Below, piece by piece: positions 1,026 to 63,900 of a stretch of 64,000 bases of DNA. The notes under the pieces are model-generated. The model ran no database searches, was not told the DNA's origin, and was given only the letters and a program-made list of their open reading frames with translations. Position numbers and translations under genes: made by a program. The DNA lies in contig QPMI01000066.1 of the NCBI GenBank assembly GCA_004431415.1, positions 434,001-498,000 on the forward strand, written 5' to 3'. The DNA comes from Cyanophora paradoxa CCMP329. Lineage: Eukaryota; Plantae; Glaucophyta. How positions within the stretch are numbered: the stretch's first letter is position 1; each line of letters opens with the position of its first letter.

Positions 1026-4000
1026 TCACGTGTCGGAGGCCCGGCAGGGGAGGTCGGTGAGGAGGGTGCGGCACCACCAGCGGCCCAGGCCGGCCTCCCT
1101 CAGCATGACGATCGTGAAGCGCGGGCGCAGGTTCGCCTCGGGGTAGTGCGGGGTGAAGAAGAACTTGTGCACGTCCACGCTTTGCCTGCCGTTAAAGCGT
1201 TCGAAACAGCTTTAACGAAGGAGCTTAAGCTTCAGGCGGCGCACGGCCTGTCGAGGGCGGGCGACTTGGCTCGGAACTGGTACAGGTTGATCACCACCTT
1301 CTCCGTCCCTTCGCCGTGCCGCATTCAAGGACTTACGATACAGAAAAGAAGGAAAGGAGCGAGAGGGGGCGCACCCGGGGTGACGAGGTCGTTGTACTTG
1401 AAGACCCAGCGGACGGGCAGCTGCTGAAACTGGCACCTGCCGGGCAGGGGCCGTCAGCACTCGGATCGCCACTCTCTGTCCTCTTGTTCGAGATCGCAGC
1501 TTATATTATTTAAGCTCATGGTTCGCGGCTCAAGCTTATAAGCTTGTTCTCTCTTTCATCGCAAGCTTATAAGCTTGTTCTCTCTTTCATCTCAAGCTTA
1601 TAAGCGTGTTCGATTTCAGAGGGGGCGCACTTGTAGACGAGGTAGCCGCACTCCTCCTGCGTCAGGAACGTGTTGCACGCCTCGTAGCAGTACGGGTTCT
1701 CCCTGTAGGTAATCATAAATTATAAGACGTTATTGTAAGGGTGCTCCGATCAGAGACAGGAAGGGTTATGCAATGTGAGGAAGGGTCTTGAGAGCGAGAA
1801 GGCGATGCTATCGTCAGCGTGCCGCAGTGCGGCGGGCGCTGCGCATTATACGGATCCGACGGCTTCTTGTATTATGCTTGTATGCCTTAGCGGTTGCGCA
1901 TCGACGTCGTTGCCAGCGGCGGGCGCGGCGCTGGCGCCAGCGGCAGCGCACGGCTTCTTCTTGTGTTTATAAATTATAACGGACGGATTGAACGGCTTCT
2001 TCTTGTGTTTATAAATTATAAGACGTTATTGTAGATCAGAGACAGAAGGCGATGTAATTCCAGCGGCGAGAGCAGAACCGCACCGGATCTCGAAGCCGCC
2101 GATGAGGACGTTGTCGTCGCTGACGTTGCTCGGGGGCTGGAACCCCTCGTGCACCGAGATCTGGGTCTGCGCGGGCGGGCACGTGCACGTTCAGAGCAGA
2201 TGGGGTCGGGGCTGTCATCGATATCGGGCCGCTCTTTCGTGCTTAGATCTTGAAGCCTAGCTAGACTCTAAGAGCCGGGGACTAGTATCGGCATCGGGCC
2301 GCGCACGTAGTTCGGCGTCCACAGAGACTAGCTTCGGACTTGGGTTAGAGACCATGCTCAGATTAAAGGCCCTGGTTCCAGCTCCAGACATTTTAGGGGC
2401 GGGGGGCGCACGTAGTTGGGCGTCCACATCATGTGGCAGGTGACGTTGGCGAGGCGCGGGGAGAGCGGCTTGTACTCCGTCCCGTTCCAGAACTGCGCGG
2501 AAACGAGCGAAATTGAAGCTCTTCAAGCGCGGGCACTAGCGGGGGGAAGCCGAAGAGTTCGATTCGCAAACTAGCTATAGATGCCTTAAAAGAAGCGGAC
2601 CTTGTTGTGGGAGCCGACGCGGAAGCGCTGGATGAAGTCTTTCCCCAGCACGTAAGGCTGAGATTAAATATTTAAGATTACAATGATGCGGCGTCGAGCA
2701 ACGGCGAGCAGGCGGGCCGGGCCGGGCGGGCCTGGACGGCGATCTGGAAGTTGGTGTTCTCCTGGTAGCCCCACCGCCCGAACTCGAAGTCGAGCTCCCG
2801 GAACGCGAACGGCCGCGCCGCTGCGGGAGGCGGCGGCGGCAGCGTCGGTCGAGGCCGCCGTGCAGGGCGGAGCGCTTGGGCCGGACCGGTGTAGCCGAAG
2901 TCGTAGGTGAAGAGGCCGAGGATGGCGTAGTTGTCCAGCTCCTCCACCTGCCCCGTGGAGGAATGGGAAGAGCGCAGATGGCGTGAGGCGAAGGGCGCAG
3001 GTAGGGCCGAGGGGCCCGAGGCGGGAGTAAGGGGATCTAGTTTGAATCCGGGGAGGACCGGGGCAGGCGGTGTCAAGGTCTCGATCCCGAGCGAGATCTA
3101 GCCTGAAGGGGAAGGCCGGGGCCGGCGGGGGCGAGGGCGGACCGAGTTCTTGCCGACGCCGGAGATCCAGAAGGTGTAGTTGCCGTACCCGAGCGGCTCG
3201 TGCGAGACGATCTCGGAGGAGTACCACTGCACCCGGTTCGTCCCATCCGCCTGCAGGAAGGAAGGAACCTTCTAGAACTGCTGCCGAGGGCGGGCGCCGG
3301 CGTGCGGGCGGGCGCGCCTGGGTCTTGTTAATGTTGAGGTGGAGCACGTCCTTTCCGTCGTCCGACACGTACAGGATCGGCTTCCTGCCAGCGCGCGGGC
3401 AGGCGGGCGCGTCTCAGAATTACATAACAGGCGGGGCGGCGTGGGCGTGGGGCGCGCTTGTTGTAGAAGAAGGCGGGCCCCGGGAGCTCCAGCTGCCGGC
3501 GGCAGACGGGGCGGGCGGGCGGGCCTCAGACAGACAGACAGACAGAAGAGAAGAGACAGAGACAGACAGACAGAAGACGGACCTTGTCGACGGAGAGCTT
3601 GGGGATCCAGAGGGTGTCGGCCCAGTGGAGGGCCCCGGGCTCCCGCCCCGCCTGCGCGCCCCCGATCATGATCAGCTAACATCACGAGCTTCCAACTTTT
3701 CCAACACATTTAGAGCTCTCTCCAAATTAAATGAGACCCTTTATGAACCATCTAGAGCGAAACCCTCAAGAAGGCCGGACCTTTACACCATCTCGAATTT
3801 ATATCGCGAATTTATGCACAGTCTAGAACGAAGGCCTCTAGCTACAGAAGGCCGGACCTTGACGTTGCAGAGGGCGTCGGCGGCGACGCGGTCGGGGAGC
3901 ACGCCGAACTCCGCCATGATCGCCACCTGGGGGGGGGGCGGGCGGAAGTTGGGCGAAGGGAGGCTGAGCGGAAGGGAGGGAAGGAGAGAGGGGCGGGGGC

Positions 4001-38370: not shown

Positions 38371-39554
38371 AGTACCGGTACCGGTAGTACCGTACGGTAG
38401 ACGGTAGACCTTATAATTACAGTCGGTACTACTACGTATACCGTACTAGTAGTAAAACTGTGGTATTGATATCGTTCGACGGTTTCGCGTTGTACCCTCC
38501 AGTTCCGACGGGCTCCTAGTAGCATTCTACTAGCCTTCTAGCACCGTGCCACGGTGGTCGTGCACGTCGTACGTCACGGCGTGCGCACTGCGGCATGCCA
38601 CGGTCACCGCCGACTCACCGGGTGACACGCATGCCACGGTCACCGGGTCACCGGGTGACACCGGCCTCAGGGCCTGACACCGTAGTGGGCCGGTAGTGGC
38701 CCGGTACTAGCTGGCCCGGTAGTAGCCCGGTACTACTGTAGTATATGGTACCACTGGGGCCGTGTGACTGGCCCAGTGGGCCGGCAGCACTGCGGCATGA
38801 ACACGGTTCATTCCCCCAATCGCGATCGTACGCGTCGAGCCCGCCGGGGCGCGACTGTCGCAGTGTCGCTGCAGTGTCGCAGCACTCTGTCGGGGAGTAC
38901 TACCCCGGTAGTCGACCGTGACGGGGACTCGGCCCGAGTCGACTCGGCGAGCACCGGGCCGCCGGGCGGCCCGGGCCCGGGCCGGGCGGGGCCCGGCGGG
39001 CGCCGGGGCCCGGCCGCCCGGGGCCGGGGCCCCCCGCCGAGCGGCCCGAGCCCCCGCCCGGGCCGCCGCCCCCCCGGCCCGGCCCTACTACTGCCGCCCT
39101 AGGCCTGGGCGGCCCGGGCGCCTGCCCCCGCCGGCCCCCCGGTCCGATGATCGACTCCGATCGCGACTTCGAAGCTCGGCGTCGAGTCGGCGAGGGCCCG
39201 ATCGCGAGAGTGCGCATGCTGCTGGATATCGATGATCCTGCAGCTGGATCCCCACTCCGGACTGCTTCGAATTCCCCCCTGGGGCCTGGGGCCGCCCCCG
39301 GATGGCGTCGACCTGATCATGACTCGATCGCGAGCTCGAGGACAGATCGATTTCGAATTCTAGTTCTAGCCAGGCCTCGGGGGGGACCGGAGGGGAAGGG
39401 GGAAGGGTAGGGGAGATAGATGAAAACGCAATGATTGGAGACGGGCCCGGGGGGGAGGTGGACTCGAAGGGAAGGGCCCGGGGGCGGGCCCGGGGAGGGA
39501 GGGGGGTGGGGGGGGGGCGGGGGGAGGCAGGGAGGGGGTTCGGGGGTAATGCTG

Positions 39555-42294
39555 CTAGGGGAGGAATGCGCCGCGGACGGAGCGCCGCTGGTCGATGGGG
39601 ACACGGCAGGAGGGGCAGGCGGGGGGCTTCGGGGCCGCCGGCGGCGGCGGCGGGCGGGCGGCGAGCAGCGCGCCGTAGCAGCCGTCGCAGACGGTCATGT
39701 GGCGGCAGGGCAGCAGCAGGACGGAGGGCGGGCGCTCGGTGCAGACGACGCAGAGCGACTGCTGCTGCTCGGCGCGCTGGCGGGCCGCCCGCTCCTCGTC
39801 CGCCTGCCGCTGCAGCGCCGCCGTCGCCTCCGCCACGCGCGCCGCGACGAGGGCCGCCGAGAGGGCGGCCGCGCCCTCGGCGAGGCGCGCCTGCGCCGCC
39901 TCGAGCTGGGCCGCCGAGAGGCCGGCCAGGCCCGCGGGGGCGACGGGCACGCTCCCCGCCAGGCGCCCCTCCAGCTCCGCCACCCGCGCCTCCAGCCCCG
40001 CCCTCTGCGGTCCCGGCGCGGCACAAAAGTTAATGAGAAGGATCCGAACTTTTCATGATCAGGGCCGCCTCACGTTTGCGAGGGCGGCCTGCAGGGCGGC
40101 CGCGCGCGCCTCGGCGCCCTCCGCCCGCCCCAGCAGCGCCTCCTCCCGCATCATACCCTGCGAATCCGAAGGATTGGGAGCCGCTTAGGCGATCGGGGAG
40201 GGGGGCCCCGGGATCCGGAGACCAGCTGGAGAATAAACTGAAACTAGCCGGAGATTAATGCATTGTGGGGGCCTCTGGAGAGTTGATGGAGAATTTTAGG
40301 AGATTTCGTCTCCGCGCTATTATTTTAAGCTTAAGCTTAAGCTTAGGGGCGGCGCGGCCAGCTCGAGGTAATTGGCGCACGTCGGCAAGGGCGTCCGCGA
40401 GGGTCTCCGCCCGTGCCGCCTCCACGCGCGCCTTCGCTTCCGCCTCCGCCACCGCCAGCCGCTCCCGCGCCGCCGCCGCCTCCACCCGTGCCGCCTCCGC
40501 CTCCCGCCTCCCTTCTGCCGCGAGCGTCTTCTGCCGCGCCGCCTCCGCCCGCGCTGCTTCCGCCTCCCGCTTTGTCTCCGCAGCGAGCTTCTTTTGCCGC
40601 GCTGCTTCCGCCCGCGCTGCTTCTGTTTCCTGCTTCTCCTTTGCGGCGAGCTTCTTTTGCTGCGCCGCCTCCGCCCGCGCCGCTCGCCCCTCCGCCCGCG
40701 CCTCCTTGACGCGCTCCTCTGCTTCCGCCTTCGCCGCCGCCAGCCGCTCCCGCGCTGCCGCCGCCTCGGCCTGCGCCTCCGCGAGCTGCCGTCTTAGCGC
40801 CTCCTCCGCCGCCGCGGCCTCCCGCTGCCATTCCCGGTTCATTTTTACCACCTCCGCCCGAGCCTCCTCGTAGCGCTTGGCCAACTTTATAGCCGTCGCC
40901 ACCTGCCCCAGCGCTTGCTCAAGGGCACGCTCCAGATTTGTTTCCGCACGATGCACCGGCTGCTGCTCCGCCTCCTGCCCGGTCTCAACGTCAGCCCGAA
41001 GGAGCTAGCGCTCAAGGCATAGTGGACCAAATATTAAGTGGCGCCGGCGTGCAGACCTCCGGCTTCAGCCGCTTTGCCTCCTTGGGGTCCGCCGAGCCCC
41101 CGCCCTCCCCCTGCTCGTTCTCCTTCTCCGCCGCGGAGTGCCCCGCTGACCCCTCCTTCGCAGCTGTCGCCGCCTGCTCCCGCAACCGCGCCGCCTCCGC
41201 CTCGGCGAGAGCCAAGGCACGCTCCAGATCTGCCTCCTCAAGACGCGCTTGCTCCAGGACACGCCCCAGATTTGTTTCCGCGCAATGCACAGGCTGCTGC
41301 TCCGCCTCCTGCCCGGTCTCGGCGTCAGCCCGCAGGAGACAGCGCTGAAGCTAAGTAGATTGAGCCGGCGCCGGCGTGCTGACCTGCGGTTCCAGCCGCT
41401 TCGCCTCCTGCCGCTTCGCCTCCTCGAAGTGCGCCGAGCCCCCGCCCTCCCCCTCCTTGTTCTGCGCTACGGAGCGCCCTACTGAACCATCCGCGTCGTC
41501 CTTGCTTCCCGCAACGGCGCCCTCGCCGCCGGCCCCGGGGAGCGGGGGGGGGGCGGCGGGCCCGGGGCTGGCTCCGGCGTCGGCGCCAGGGAGCGGCGGG
41601 GCGGCGGGCCCGGGGCTGGCGCCGGCGTTGACACCGGGGAGCAGGGGCGGGGCGGCAGGGCCAGGGCCGGGGTTGGCGCCGGCTCCGGAAGGCGGGGGCG
41701 GGGAGGCGGGCCCGGGGCTGGCGTCGACGTTGGCGTCGTCATCGGAGAACTCGCCGGGGTCAGGGTATAAGGACTTGAACTCGTCGTCCACGTACTTCGG
41801 GGCACCTCCAGCCCCAGCCGCGCCGCCTCCTGGGGGCCCACCTGCATCGCCCCCGCCGTCATGCACTATTATCTATCGCGGCTCCAGGCGGGGTGGGAGA
41901 CGGGGGAGGGAGGGGGAGGGGGAGAGGGAGTGGGGGGGGGGGGGGGGCGGGGCCGGGGGGGGGGGGGGGTGGGGGGGGCGGAGTTCACCTTCTGGACGAT
42001 GAGCTCCTGGATCTCCGATCGCTTCCACTCAATGTGGTCCACCGAGAACCAGTCCTCTTTCTGGGGCGCCGCAGGAGATAAGAGAAGAGCGGAGCTGCGG
42101 GATGCCTATATGTATGGGATGGGGCAGGCTATTGTCGGGGGCACCATGACGACGAGGGGGCCCTTCTTGTCGCGGACGAACGGTACAAGGGGGTCCCGAA
42201 TGAAGCGCTCGATGTACTCGAGCACGAAGACTCCTCCATCTGTCGAGCTGTCTTGCTTCGGCACCTGCCCACGGCCGCGGTCTGGAAATGCCGG

Positions 42295-42326
<32 letters not shown>

Positions 42327-44611
42327 CTGCGGCTGCAAGCTTAATTATATAAGCCCCGCCCTGCACACCTCGGCTGTAATCTTGGTGAAGTAGACGGGCG
42401 CCGAGGATGGCCTGGTGGCCTCTGAGCTCTGGGCACGGGGGGGCCGGAATCGATCTTCTTTTTGCCAAGCATTTCGCAAGTATCTGAGGTCCATGGCCAT
42501 GCATATGGCCAGGGCGGGGTCAGTAAATCGAGGGACTGGATCCGGATGCGCCTAGGGAGGGCAAGGGCACCCTTCGATCATGTCCAGGGCCACCTTGTTG
42601 GAAGTTTTCATGGAGCTGAGGTACATGATGCAGGCCCGGTCCCTGCCCTCGAGCACCCGTAGAGCTTCCATCACAAACGCACGCCGCGGGTTGCACACGA
42701 TTGTCAGCGCCCAGTGTGCTCTGCGGGATTTGGACCCTCCAGCTCAGCCAGAGCGGCAGCACCAGGCGTAGAAGGGTCGGCTGCGTACTCGTCGAGCCCT
42801 TGAAGCACGTGGACAGGGATGAAGAGGTAGTCGAGGGTGAAGATGTCGACATTGCGCGTCCACCTCCGCACCGCCTCGTAGTTCCCCTCCGGGTCCCCCC
42901 CCTGGCCCCACGCATGGTTAGCCGTCCGAAGTTCGGTCCGAATGGTTTTAAAATTCACTGCAGACCAGGCTCAAACGCGTGTAAAAGAAAGAGTTGAAGA
43001 AGTGGCAGCGTAGGGGCCGCTCGCCGCGCTCTGCCCGCGTTCGGTTCACATTTGGCAGGAGCTCCACCTCAATGTACCTGCATCACCGGCAAAATTGGGC
43101 GAAAGTTCGAGTCATAATGAATCGACTGGACGAGTCGAGTCGAGGGCGCGCGGGCGCGCTTGAGGTAAAAATCGATGACGTTGTCGTTGAGCATCTCGCC
43201 TGGCCTCAACCGCTCGAAGTCCCTCTTCGTCAGCGCCTGCTGCCGCGTTTAGAATTCAGCCCGTCCCGCAAACCCGGCGGGGCGGCGCACGACGGCGCGT
43301 TTGTGCCCGGGCGGGTAGAGCAGGATCTGGATCATGCCTGGATCCGAGGGCGATTCAATGCGTCTGGAGAGCAAGGGGGCGATAGGGCGTCAGTGCAGCG
43401 GCGGCCAGGGGTGTGCAGCAGGGCGGGGCTGTGGGCAGACCTGGACTCTACGTATACGTTCGCGGGGCCCAATTTGGGTGCTGGGAGAACGTAGCGCGCA
43501 AAATCCTCGTTCCTGCGGCGCGCGCAAGCGCTTAAATGCAAGCACAGATCTAGGAATATTTATATGCGCTGCGCCACGGGGACATCGCCCTGGGACGCGC
43601 GCATTACAGCTGACCTCAGCCAGGCAGAATTGTCGTGCGCGATCTTCAAGGAAGGGTAGCAGCAGAGCGCGCTCATTTCTGATACTTGCCGTTGGTGTTC
43701 CGGAGTGAAGGGAAAGATGAGGACGATGCAGTTCTTCTCGATCTCTGCGACACGCGCCGAAAGATGAGGCAAAGAAGCGGAATTCGACTTGTACTTGGCA
43801 AAGCTCACCCTGTGAGAACGGGTCGTAGTACGGATCGAATGCGAACTGTGCATGACCTCCCGCAATCAGCGCAACAAGTGAGGGCGACACGTCCATCGCC
43901 CCCACCCACCATGAGATCCGGATCCCGGTCGGTTCGAATGACCAAGAACAGGTGCGGTTCACTCTCGTATATCTGGTGCGCGCCCCCGCCCGCGATTAAA
44001 CGACGCCTACTGCCTAAAGAGCGCTGGCAGCATTTAGCGCACCTGGAAGTAGGATATTGCCTCCGAGGGGATCTTGACCGTCTTGGAGCCGTGCTTGCGC
44101 ATGCTGCATGCATATGGGCGGGCAGTGCACGTGATTATGAGAATGGGCAGCCGCGGGAGGCCTAGAGCAGGATCGAAAGGCGGAGGGAGGGGAGGGGGCG
44201 AGGGGGAGAAAGAGGGGGGGAGGGGGTACGGGGGGAAGCGGGGGAGGGGGGGGGCGCGCAATAGGGGGAGGGGAAGGGGCGCACTTGCTCAGGACGGGGA
44301 TGTCGAGCTCAAACTCGACATCTTTCTGCACGGCGCCCACGTTGACACGCACTTCGAACGGTTGGTCTATCCACCAGGTCCCGATGCGGCCCAGCTTCGG
44401 CCGGAAGTGCATCTGCACCTAGCGCCCGCACCACAAAGTGACCACTTGCGTACATTGCAGGACCGGCGCGCACCTTGACAGCCGCAGGGCCGGTCGCGGC
44501 CGGCTCCGCGCCCGCGCCGCCCGCCCGCGCCGGCGCCGCGGGGCCCCGAAGCTCCAGGCGTCTCTGCAGTCGAGCGCGCAACTCCTTCTTGCGATCTTGC
44601 TCGCTCTTCAT
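39555..44611 (-). CDS. SENP6/7(Ulp2)-like C48 peptidase domain (catalytically substituted) + low-complexity linker + coiled coil + C-terminal C3HC4 RING
   Basis: Exons: LLYPPGTNA|ALTKRDFERLRPGEMLNDNVIDFYLK|YIEVELLP...CHFFNSFFYTRL, YEAVRRWTRNVDIFTLDYLFIPVH...HWALTIVCNP...CIMYLSSM, YLRNAW, VPKQDSSTDGGVFVLEYIERF, DWFSVDHIEWKRSEIQELIVQK|IIVHDGG. All downstream junctions are phase 0 into the Ala/Glu/Lys coiled coil and then CVVCTERPPSVLLLPCRHMTVCDGC...CPSCR. Stop at 39555-39557. Confidence 0.8.
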
Positions 44612-45680
44612 TAAAGAACCTGCCCGGTGCGCATGCGCTGATCATCTGCCGGCCGCGCGCGGCGCCCATGCATGGCGATGGCCATGCATGCGCATGCATA
44701 TGCATATCATGGGCGCTGGGCCGGGCGGCGCACCTCAATCGCGACACGCTATGAGCCGAAGCCGATGCGAGGAAGCTGCCAGCTGTTTGCTTCGTCGCGC
44801 CCCGCGGCCGCGGCCCGGCGCGTGTGCCCGCGCGCGGCGCTGGCTGCAGCGCGGCTCCCCCGCCGCGGGCCTGCGCACCGCACGAAGTCCGCGCTCACTC
44901 AAAGCTACTAGGCTACGTGATGGGAGCACGTTAACGCTCGCTCGGTGTCCACTCGCAGCGTTCGCTTGCAACCAACGTAGCGGCGCGGGCGACTACGCAG
45001 CTGCCGCCTTCCCGCGCGTTCGCTGCAGGTGTTTGCTGTCGCCTCGCGAGGATGCGGGATCGCCCTGCCCGCGGCGCGCCAGCGCCGGTCCGCCTGCTTG
45101 CCAGCGCTTGCAATGTACCGGTACCCCTAGGCCTGAGCTCGAGCTCTAGATCTCAAGAGGCCATATGCATGGCCAGGGCCTGGCGCTGGGCGCCGGCCGC
45201 GCCTCAGGGCCGCCTGGGCCCCCCATGGCCAGGCTACATATGCATGCCCCCCAGGCCCTGAGGCCCGGCTCTCATGATCAGCTGCAGAGCCTGGATCCGG
45301 AGCCGGTGCGCGCGCGCCGGGCGCCGGACGCGGACCGTCAAAGCGTGCAGCTGCGCCTGCAGCTGCAGACTTGCAATTGTATGCGAGTATAACAAGCTCT
45401 GAAACATTTCAATAGCTAGGCCGGCGCTCCGAGGCTCCAGCAAACATTCTGGGCCTACCCGACCTAGTAGGATACGATGGAGAAGCCGCGCTCTGCGGGC
45501 GCAGCACTAATACTGTCGATGCGGAGGCATCTCGACTGATATGGTACAACTAATCGTGGGAGCGAAAAGGACGGAAAAGCGGAAGAGGTAGAGGAACGAG
45601 AGCCCGTTCCAAGGCTCAGAGGTGCGAAAACTCTTAAGAGAAGAGCGGCAAAAGGCAGCCCGGGCTCGTGCATGTCCGAA

Positions 45681-60996: not shown

Positions 60997-63900
60997 ATGC
61001 CGGGGGCGAAGAAGGCGGTCTACGAGCTGACCGACCTGGCCGAGATCTCCAAGGCGCTCCAGGACGTCAATAAACGTGAGAAGAACGTCGATGGCGAGCT
61101 GGACCAGCTCTTCGCGAACCGCACGTCCCTGCAAGCGAAGCTCGACCAGCTCCAAACGCTCCAGTGCGCTTCCGAACGCGCAGTCGCCCTAGCTGCGTTA
61201 GCTGCGCCGGCGGACCGGCCGCGCCCCCGATTTCTCATCGCCGCGCGCCGTCTCCCGCCCAACGCAGGCCGACGCTGGAGCGGGTGCGCGAGGACGCCGA
61301 CGCGCTCTTTGTAAAGATTTCGGAGACGTGCAGGCTTGCCGAGGATGTCAGCGGCAAAGTCCGCGAGCTGGACCTCACGCAGGTCCGCCGCCCGCCGCTG
61401 CCTCGGAGCCCGCGCCGCCTGCGCCCGGCCGACGCCGCGGCGCAGTCGCGAATGGTCTCGACGCTCAAGCGCATCGACACGATTATCCACCTGAAGGCCA
61501 GCCCGCCCCGCCCCGTCCCGCGCCGCCGCCCGCCTCGGCCGCGCTCTCCTGAACCGCGGCGCGCAGGAATGCGGCGAGAAGGTGCAGCAGGCGCTGGCGC
61601 GGGAGGACTACGAGGAGGCCGCGAAGCACGTGGGCTGGTTCCTGGAAGAGGAGAGCTCGCTCCCCGACGAGGCGGGCAAGTCCGACATGCGCTCCCGCAT
61701 CAAGCTCGTCCAGGAGAAGATTCTGACCAAGTTCCGAGCCGCCGCCCACGCGCGCAACCACCAGAACGTCTTCGCGTGCGCCCCTACCCATGCAGGACTT
61801 ATTTCCACTGTTCGGAGTTGAACCCGCGCCCAGGTACACGAAGCTGCTTTCGAGGGTCGGGCTCCGCGCGGAGGGTACCACGGAAGTCTCCCGCTACGTC
61901 CAGGAGGTCGTCCGCAGGTGCCGTACCCCCCTCTCGCCGCAGGGCGCCGGGGTACCCCTCTGAGAGTACGGTACCCCCAGCGAGGCCGAGAAGCTCATCG
62001 ACGAGGCCGCGCGCGTCTCGCCGCCCCCGTATCTCGCACTGGTCCGCCCCGGCTCCCGTACCCCCCTGGAAACCCTGTACCCCCTGCGGAGCCATAACCG
62101 TACCCCCCTCAGGTCTCCAGCCTGCTGGAAACGTTCGCGGGCCGCATCGATCAGGTCGGCAACCTCGCGGAGGAGTGCTTCGGGCAGGGTACAGGCCAGC
62201 GCATCCTCCAGCAGGTACGCCCGCGTACCCCTCCTACCGCGAATCGCGCGGTACCCTTCTGAATCCCCGTACCCCCAGGTCTTCTCGCAGGGGGACGAGC
62301 ACACGTCGTCCGTCCTCAGGCGCTACATCGAGTACAGGAACCTTGCGAACCGGGTACCCCACCCCTCGCATCCGGCGTCTCCGCTAGCCCTGTACCCTGC
62401 CGACTTCTCCCCCCCACAGATCAAGGACGCGAACGCGTCGGGCGGGACGGTGGGCGGGCTGGCGGGGGCGCTGGCGGGGGCGGCGGGGCGCGGGGCCCGG
62501 CGGGGCGGGCGCCGGGGGCGGCGGCGCGGAGCGGGACGTAAGGGAACTGGACGTGCTTCTGGACGAGGCGGCTATGCTCGCCCAGGTCCGTGTCCGCCCG
62601 TGTCCGGGCCGGCCCGGGACGCCCGGGCCGTGTTGGGCCGTGTTGGGCCGTGTTGGGCCGTGCCGTGCCGCGCTGGAAGCGGGCGCCGCCGCCTCTTGCT
62701 AGTTCGCAAAGGGGCCCCGCCGCTTGTTGCAGCGCTGCCGCCCTTCCCCGTCCCCGCCGAGGCCTGCGCTAGCGCGAGCGTTAGGGCCCAAAGGAGCAGC
62801 GTCCGCCGCCCCCGCCTGATGCCCGGCCCTCGCCCGCCGCCGCCCGCGCAGCGCTGCGAACAGTACCACCGTTTCCTCAAGAACACCGCCACGGTCCGCT
62901 CCGCCCCCTATGAAGTCCGCGCTCCCCCTCACCTCTCGCTCGCCCCCCGCAGAACGCGTACAAGGCGGCGGGCGGGGAGGCGGGCCTCGACGTGCCCTCG
63001 ATGATCCGCGGCTCGATCTCCTTCCGCGTCCTCCAGGAGCTCATCTCCCACTACGTCGGCCTCGAGCAGGCGCGCCCCCTCCGTCTTCCTTACTACTCAC
63101 ATGCTTAGTCGCTCTGCTCGCTTAGATGATCCTGAAGGCTTAGATGCTTAGATGCTTAGAAAAGTTACGTCGGCCTAGAAACAGTTAGAAAAGTTGCTTA
63201 GGCCTAGAGCAGGCACGCCCCGCCCGCCGGCCGCTTAGAGCTTAGACGCTTAGAGCGCTTAGAGCGCTTAGAGACGCTTAGAGCGCCAGAGCAAGCGGGC
63301 GATGCTGAGATGCTGCGTCGGCCCCTCGAAGAACACTTGGACGCTTAGACGCTTTAGACGGTTAGACGCTTAGACGGAGCGGTGTTTAGCCCTTCGAAAC
63401 ATTAGAAGCGAACGAAGCTTAGACGCTTAGTCGCCTCCCCCGCCCGATGGTTGCTTAGAGCCTAGACGCTTCGACGCTTAGCCCTTCGAAACATCCCGCA
63501 CCGCTCGCTCACGGGCCGCCCCCCTCCTCCCCGCAGATATTCATGCAGGACAACGTGGGCAAGGCGATACGCATCGAGGAGGCCATCCCCGGGGGTTACA
63601 CCACCTCCCTCGTCGACGAGGTCCGCCCCCGAGAAAGCAAAGCCATCTGAGCCGTCTGATCTGACCTCTTTCTCCCCCCCCTCCCCCCAGGTCTTCTTCG
63701 TGATGCGGAAGAGCGCCCAGCGCGCCATCGCCACCGGCAGGCGAGCGGGGGCCCCCCTCCTCGCTCCCCCTCGCCCCTTCCATCGGCTGACGCCGTCCCC
63801 GCCCCCGCAGCGCGGCGGCGGTCACGGCGACGCTCTCCAACCTCGTGGGCGTACTCGGCAAGGTGCCTTGCTAGCTAGCTTTCTCTGACCGAACCTAGAT

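Follow-up and report, generated by a model that had tools for sequence, protein, structure and literature searches.

Can a SUMO protease that has lost its nucleophile become the SUMO-reading part of a ubiquitin ligase? The question is raised by a gene on the minus strand of a 64,000-nucleotide stretch of DNA (the window) from contig QPMI01000066.1 of the glaucophyte alga Cyanophora paradoxa. As far as it was seen in spliced RNA contigs from three studies, the transcribed gene occupies 39555..44619 and has 20 coding exons; the surrounding window is GC-rich and eukaryotic, and the gene is nuclear. The product is stored in EukProt as EP00741_Cyanophora_paradoxa_P023358 (tig00000254_g22564.t1, 1089 residues; here P0001). 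Its domain order is a PH-like domain, a C48 domain of the Ulp2/SENP6-7 type, a Pro/Ala-rich linker, a helical region and a C-terminal C3HC4 RING. An earlier note on this DNA had proposed that the inactive C48 domain reads SUMO and that the RING ubiquitylates the conjugate. We consider this explanation, taken as a whole, plausible but a little short of probable. That the protein is the first natural SUMO-targeted ubiquitin ligase (STUbL) to read SUMO through an inactivated SUMO-protease domain, arising from a duplicated Ulp2-type eraser fused to a RING, is possible but more doubtful.

Coordinates are those of the window and residue numbers those of P0001, the stored protein used for all whole-protein analyses; exons were searched one by one against Pfam and PDB. 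The C48 domain, delimited by its PF02902 and SENP7 matches and by Foldseek, is encoded by exons 8-15 (41989..43363, minus strand; approximately residues 225-492). In P0001, Peptidase_C48 (PF02902) matched residues 251-454 with an expectation value (E) of 3.9e-23 and 82.9 bits against a cut-off of 20.7, and three C48 pieces matched the same family weakly as single exons (E of 2.7e-4, 0.006 and 0.011). The best sequence match in PDB was human SENP7 (E 6.7e-28), with SENP1 at 1.6e-16. An AlphaFold2 model of residues 40-500 had a predicted local distance difference test score (pLDDT) of 74.5. Its top Foldseek match was 7r2e_A, a chain of the SENP7-SUMO2 complex (E 8.4e-17, target template modelling score 0.80, 32% identity). 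Foldseek matches to SENP7, SENP1/2/5 and Ulp1 ranged from E 1e-17 to 1e-9, and NEDD8 proteases ranked far lower. In the phylogenetic tree, a branch with 99/98 support separated P0001 and a Cyanophora paralogue from homologues P0020 and P0027-29; the side that holds the Cyanophora pair and the other fetched homologues we take to be Ulp2-type, a label that is our own reading. Membership of the Ulp2/SENP6-7-type C48 family, as claimed in the earlier note, is thus supported by SENP7 being the best match in both sequence and modelled fold and by a tree position among Ulp2-like proteins.

The N-terminal exons had also been likened to the PH-like region of SENP6/7, and the modelled fold is in keeping with this likeness. 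In an AlphaFold2 model with a pLDDT of 71, residues 44-185 of P0001 (exons 2-6; 43615..44418, minus strand; boundaries approximate) form a beta-sandwich with a helix cap that matches the PH-like domains of FACT, SHARPIN, USP37 and Rpn13 with Z of 9-12.8. A Pfam scan of the N-terminal region returned no match, including to PF25352 (PH_ULP) at E up to 10; PH_ULP occupies the equivalent place, upstream of C48, in a Solanum ULP. These exons are predicted to encode a PH-like fold.

An active C48 peptidase has a His-Asp-Cys triad and an oxyanion-hole Gln. The catalytic His339 (CAC, 42714..42716, minus strand) faces SENP7 H794 in the HW motif, in a column that is invariant among the homologues, and Gln429 (42253..42255, minus strand), the oxyanion-hole Gln of PKQ, is retained in both the SENP7 alignment and the loop alignment. 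The Asp and the Cys are gone. Ser372 (AGC, 42615..42617, minus strand) stands at the catalytic Asp position, facing SENP7 D873, and Gly435 (GGA, 42235..42237, minus strand) stands at the nucleophile position, facing SENP7 C926. The 40-residue exon 42145-42264, when aligned to SENP7 (3eay 256-284, E 6e-6), also placed Gly opposite the catalytic Cys; the His/Asp exon alone gave no match in PDB. In addition, Ser431, two residues after Gln429, replaces the Asn of the catalytic loop. The aligned outgroup sequences had Asp at the Ser372 column and Cys at the Gly435 column without exception (17/17 for each). Among the 29 other C48 homologues fetched, 23 matched the loop pattern Gln...Asp-Cys-Gly and none had Gly at the Cys site.

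Four public sequencing runs were aligned to 39300-44800: three of RNA type (spliced, one per study) and a fourth that gave unspliced contigs and was therefore taken as DNA. No run contained alternative letters anywhere in this interval, including the catalytic codons, where TGC and GAC in the raw reads would, according to the earlier note, have spoken against it. The codons of Gly435 and Ser372 are therefore not assembly errors, and that explanation was rejected. With Gly in place of the nucleophile Cys and Ser in place of the Asp, the protein cannot be a cysteine protease, and the C48 domain is, on its residues, a non-peptidase homologue. The earlier note had read the replaced nucleophile, the catalytic His and the oxyanion Gln correctly, as judged by the SENP7 alignment and by codon arithmetic.

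The same genome encodes, on a different contig, a paralogue of 1496 residues (P0004; EP00741_P007991, tig00001234_g7730.t1), which is the sister of P0001 in the tree with support of 100/99. The two proteins are 51-54% identical across the PH-like domain, the C48 domain and a KYVDDEFKSL motif, with 59% for the PH-like region and a range of 51-66% over the shared parts; divergence is approximately 35% within the C48 domain and 46-49% over the whole shared region. The paralogue retains the nucleophile Cys and the loop Asn, has no RING, and carries a long disordered N-terminus and a C-terminal tail. Duplication of a host SUMO protease gene of the Ulp2/SENP6-7 type is the best explanation for the origin of the gene, judging from these sequences, and a Cys-keeping, RING-less paralogue fits an eraser copy that has been turned into something else.

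The Asp position requires a different history. The paralogue has Cys there, where all 17 outgroup homologues have Asp. Because it too is without the Asp, and because its TGC and the AGC of P0001 are one base apart, the Asp was most likely lost before the duplication. The earlier note had counted the Asp-to-Ser change at 42615-42617 as part of the conversion of the enzyme. The position was confirmed, but a loss that predates the duplication is not part of that conversion. Of the two catalytic changes that the note wanted compared among relatives, Cys-to-Gly proved private to P0001, the Asp change was not shared as Ser, and our searches found no orthologue. Just after the C48 domain, the motif KYVDDEFKSL[Y/H]PDP is near-identical in both paralogues (window approximately 41745-41795, minus strand; P0004 approximately 735-750) and may be a functional linear motif.

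If the gene were an expressed but functionless fusion, specific to its lineage, in which a Cys-less duplicate ran into a helical-RING coding region and was left to drift, conserved positions of the protease fold should say so. We compared approximately 41 C48 columns with conservation of 75% or more among 18 outgroup homologues. P0001 departs at five of them. Three departures are common to the paralogue (the Asp, a Leu-to-Met and a Glu-to-Ala). The two found in P0001 alone, Asn431Ser and Cys435Gly, fall within the catalytic loop, and a single departure is private to P0004. Terminal branch lengths were 0.29 for P0001 and 0.21 for the paralogue, a ratio of only 1.4 despite approximately 35% divergence of the C48 domain. 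The exons keep a codon-position pattern in base composition (GC3 0.67-0.89, GC2 low), all 20 of them are in frame over 1102 codons once a base missing from the window is restored, and RNA from three studies shows transcription with correct splicing. A functionless fusion would agree with the repetitive, recently duplicated linker and helical region and with a gene that is known from one species and for which our searches found no orthologue; given the pattern of losses, we regard it as distinctly unlikely. The constraint pattern fits a maintained pseudoenzyme, not decay.

A fragment of Ulp1 captured by a transposon was likewise rejected as the source of the C48 domain, by the Ulp2-type position in the tree and by the long open reading frames of the window, in which no transposon protein or domain was seen. 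The domain is of the host Ulp2 type, with a PH domain beside it and a paralogue in the host genome. The decaying or transposon-borne Ulp1 piece that the earlier note had held out as its own possible undoing is not what these results point to.

A RING is absent from all 29 of the other C48 homologues that we retrieved. A HMMER search of a representative library with the 40-residue Cys exon returned P0001, the paralogue, two repeat artefacts and nothing else. Word-based searches with residues 40-500, both within the full-length protein and as a separate piece, and with the RING region (1005-1089) gave no orthologue and no other protein that joins C48 to a RING; since such searches depend on shared words and on length, this does not prove absence. 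A metagenome contig scan with the paralogue alignment produced no relatives, and an ESM Atlas feature search no usable match. Within the limits of our searches, neither a paper nor a protein with a C48+RING architecture was found in the literature or the databases.

The RING lies at 39606..39752 (minus strand), with its eight zinc ligands at residues 1025-1073 and a C-terminal tail of 16 residues. The profile zf-C3HC4_3 (PF13920) matched the last exon at E 1.3e-12 and P0001 at E 3e-11 (residues 1022-1079), so that both profiles named in the earlier note, Peptidase_C48 and this one, are found in a single protein, and the RING that it had called intact has every ligand and belongs to the same gene model. 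The closest solved RING sequences were those of CGRRF1, XIAP and cIAP (E 6e-5 to 6e-4). All eight ligands of the C3HC4 cross-brace are present, as in RING-type ubiquitin ligases (E3s), and the RING may have E3 activity. Between linker and RING, exons 17-19 (40074..41308, minus strand) encode an Ala/Glu/Arg-rich helical region of approximately 375 residues (A 33%, E 17%, R 11%) with internal duplications.

Would the C48 domain still recognize SUMO? Across the family, SUMO is contacted by an Asp in LND, a Phe in FNSFF and a Trp in RW, and its di-glycine is clamped between a Trp (in SENP5; in SENP6/7 a Phe) and the HW Trp; in the NEDD8-specific member, the contact Phe and Trp differ (PMC12098989). 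By our own mapping, which follows motif register, P0001 keeps all four contacts, as D254, F292, W313 and W340. Specificity of the NEDD8 type was rejected, as the contact residues are kept and NEDD8 proteases ranked low in the fold search. When its Cys is mutated, the catalytic domain of Ulp1 binds SUMO as well as SUMO2 chains and conjugates (PMC3216068), which bears out the earlier note on this point. Known STUbLs read SUMO through short SUMO-interacting motifs, or SIMs (PMC3216068). Outside its folded domains, P0001 contains no motif resembling a SIM, and the sole SIM-like core with acidic flanks sits within the PH-like domain, on a predicted beta-strand; any SUMO reading would therefore have to come from the C48 domain. 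The absence of SIMs counts against membership of the known SIM-based STUbLs but not against working like one. From the kept contacts, and by analogy with the Ulp1 mutant, the C48 domain may bind SUMO.

Trapping of SUMO conjugates could also serve another end. P0001 might be a regulatory pseudoenzyme that competes with the paralogue for polySUMO substrates or shields them, its RING being used for turnover of itself or of the paralogue instead of for degrading substrates. The PH-like domain, the C48 domain and the KYVDDEFKSL motif are common to both proteins at 51-66% identity, so they could meet the same partners, and the conjugate trapping by Cys-mutant Ulp1 (PMC3216068) would suit such a role as well. 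An intact RING at the C-terminus of a long spacer exceeds the needs of a decoy, and we hold this regulatory role to be unlikely.

The coding span runs from the ATG at 44611 to the stop TAG at 39555-39557, with exon boundaries, phases and splice dinucleotides checked. Joints in the RNA contigs read CT..AC on the plus strand, that is GT..AG on the minus strand, and contigs from three studies are spliced at GT..AG or GC..AG sites through both halves of the gene; the GC-AG intron, 43078-43159, is backed by spliced contigs in three runs. The exon after ...SNK continues as far as 42571; it is followed by exons 42369-42483 and 42145-42264. Downstream, the joints 41307/41383, 40973/41056, 40156/40380 and 40004/40074 are all present in RNA contigs. 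They establish the junctions EPQ|EAE, KPE|EAE, LAD|GMM and LAN|RAG of the earlier note, whose fifth junction, IVQK|IIVH, is really IVQK|VGPQ.

The fifth junction was needed in the earlier note because the window contains a one-base assembly deletion. A base is missing from the C-run 41799-41802: all four runs, that of DNA included, have an extra base behind 41798. Restoring it gives the frame IVQK|VGPQ...VPPKYVDDEF, with exon 16 beginning at 41841, and brings the summed exon lengths from 3305 to 3306 nucleotides, or 1102 codons (1101 residues and a stop). The same deletion made the EukProt model skip 19 residues (VPPKY...PDPGE), and the KYVDDEFKSL motif is consequently absent from the database protein. 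Compared with the RNA-supported model, P0001 lacks these 19 residues and has seven extra, FQFILQL, a micro-exon without support from RNA joints.

The C48 and RING halves meet in exon 16 (41384..41841, minus strand), which encodes the conserved KYVDDEFKSLYPDP motif followed by the Pro/Ala/Gly-rich repeat linker and contains a tandem repeat with a period of 51 nucleotides (4.1 copies, 41530-41734). It is here that two separate transcripts, or an artefact of assembly or annotation such as a transposon-borne Ulp1 fragment lying beside a RING gene, could be suspected. Run X1 gave one contig of 39717-41625 and another from 41676 to 44617 and beyond, a contig of run X15 began at 41642, and the two halves differ in depth. 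The contigs of both halves stop within this one open exon, at its 51-nucleotide repeat. Tandem repeats are places where assemblers commonly break. Over the gap, 41626-41641, the depth bin is filled in all RNA runs and a DNA contig spans 41598-41882, and the independent EukProt gene model unites the C48 and RING halves. The evidence that both halves are on one mRNA is strong but not final, and we consider separate transcripts or an artefact highly improbable.

Several points weigh against a SUMO trap joined to a ubiquitin ligase. Regarding the transcript, no RNA contig listed bridges 41626-41641, and in two runs the word depth of the 3' contig was approximately 1.8 times that of the 5' contig; given this inequality, an additional transcript with an internal start may exist. 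Regarding the trap, the first residue of the di-glycine clamp is Met in both paralogues, compared with Trp in SENP5 and Phe in SENP6/7, the groove might be altered by having Gly and Ser in the loop at the active site, and, with the Asp absent from both paralogues, their ancestor was perhaps an unusual enzyme already. In the ligase part, a Pro-rich insert of 20 residues separates RING ligands 6 and 7, and heptad periodicity in the helical region is significant in residues 641-760 only (z 4.4). For this reason we term the region helical rather than an established coiled coil; the coiled coil of the earlier note has support from periodicity in residues 641-760, and the rest of the region has no significant periodicity. 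Finally, no orthologue was found in the library, word-based and metagenome searches.

Some of these points would suit a RING ligase in which the dead C48 domain and the PH-like domain are a general scaffold for a partner other than SUMO, with no dependence on SUMO. Pseudoenzymes often acquire new partners and PH-like folds bind many ligands; with them go the two altered positions of the catalytic loop, the Asp already lost in both paralogues and the Met of the clamp. Such a scaffold would not account for the retention of D254, F292, W313 and W340, nor for private changes that occur only in the catalytic loop, as expected of a kept substrate groove. We regard the general scaffold as somewhat unlikely.

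Other features of the locus concern its ends, its repeats and its neighbourhood. Exon 1 starts at 44619, preceded by an AG, and a further 5' exon is spliced to it; RNA contigs continue upstream past this splice for 376 nucleotides in run X1 and 365 in run X2. As no stop in frame separates 44619 from the ATG at 44611, the true start may be in the upstream exon. The C-terminal half of the gene is, from its repeats, enlarged by recent internal duplication. A unit of approximately 334 nucleotides (exon end, intron and exon start) is duplicated at 81-89% identity (40911-41016 with 41245-41350, and 41040-41121 with 41367-41463), and a 63-nucleotide, 21-residue repeat is present in 3.4 copies within 40469-40684, in the helical region. 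RNA contigs of two runs contain a non-canonical AC..GC joint at 40483-40762, with a skip of 278 and one side of only 21; because it falls inside the 63-nucleotide repeats, collapse by the assembler is a likelier cause than splicing. Approximately 17 kilobases away, an open reading frame on the plus strand (61164-62387) matches the N-terminal domain of the Golgi complex subunit COG4 (E 3.5e-7) and looks like an ordinary host gene.

How might a SUMO trap with a RING have arisen, and how would it work? An eraser gene would have been duplicated; one copy, P007991, would have kept its Cys, and the other would have lost the Cys (to Gly) and the Asn (to Ser). The Cys-less copy would have retained the PH-like domain, the protease fold and the SUMO-contact residues, and it carries the linker, the helical region and an IAP/CGRRF1-like RING. 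Its dead C48 domain, possibly aided by the PH-like domain, would hold SUMO or a SUMO conjugate uncut in the old substrate groove. The RING, possibly paired through the helical region, would then recruit a charged ubiquitin-conjugating enzyme and ubiquitylate the bound conjugate. That the RING is paired, and that binding is coupled to ubiquitylation, is our inference. The protein would then act like a STUbL, with a folded substrate trap as its reader in place of short SIMs.

If this is correct, there is a second way, beyond the SIM-based ligases, to build a ligase for crosstalk between SUMO and ubiquitin, and the gene would be a clear case of an eraser becoming a reader and a natural counterpart of a laboratory SUMO trap. 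Its reach is limited to the one species from which the gene is known. The Cyanophora pair, one with and one without the Cys, is a ready comparison for the role of the protease fold beyond catalysis, and the lack of the catalytic Asp in both copies raises the question of how the Cys-keeping copy works.

With the polySUMO-editing proteases SENP6, SENP7 and Ulp2, the Cyanophora protein shares the C48 fold and the motifs LND, FNSFFY, RWT, HW and PKQD, its top matches being to SENP7; it differs from them in having Gly for the Cys, Ser for the Asp and a RING. Like the plant ULP2-like proteins (Solanum PH_ULP + C48), it has a predicted PH-like domain directly upstream of C48, although this region gives no sequence match to the PH_ULP profile. 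At the other end, its RING resembles those of the IAP/CGRRF1 type (XIAP, cIAP1/2, CGRRF1) in C3HC4 spacing, in the short tail after the last Cys and in its C-terminal position, but contains a Pro-rich insert and follows unrelated N-terminal domains.

In proposed logic, the nearest systems are the STUbLs RNF4, Slx5/Slx8 and RNF111, in which a SUMO-reading part is combined with a RING that acts on SUMO conjugates. The RING of RNF4 is at the extreme C-terminus, as in the Cyanophora protein. These ligases read SUMO by SIMs, whereas the Cyanophora protein would use a folded, inactive protease domain. In that respect it resembles the engineered trap Ulp1(3)C580S (UTAG; Elmore et al. 2011, PMC3216068), also a C48 catalytic domain without its nucleophile, to which SUMO, SUMO2 chains and conjugates bind but by which they are not cleaved (PMC3216068). 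UTAG is a laboratory Cys-to-Ser change in the Ulp1 branch and was used beside a separate RNF4 protein; the Cyanophora protein has a natural Cys-to-Gly change in the Ulp2 branch and carries its RING on the same polypeptide.

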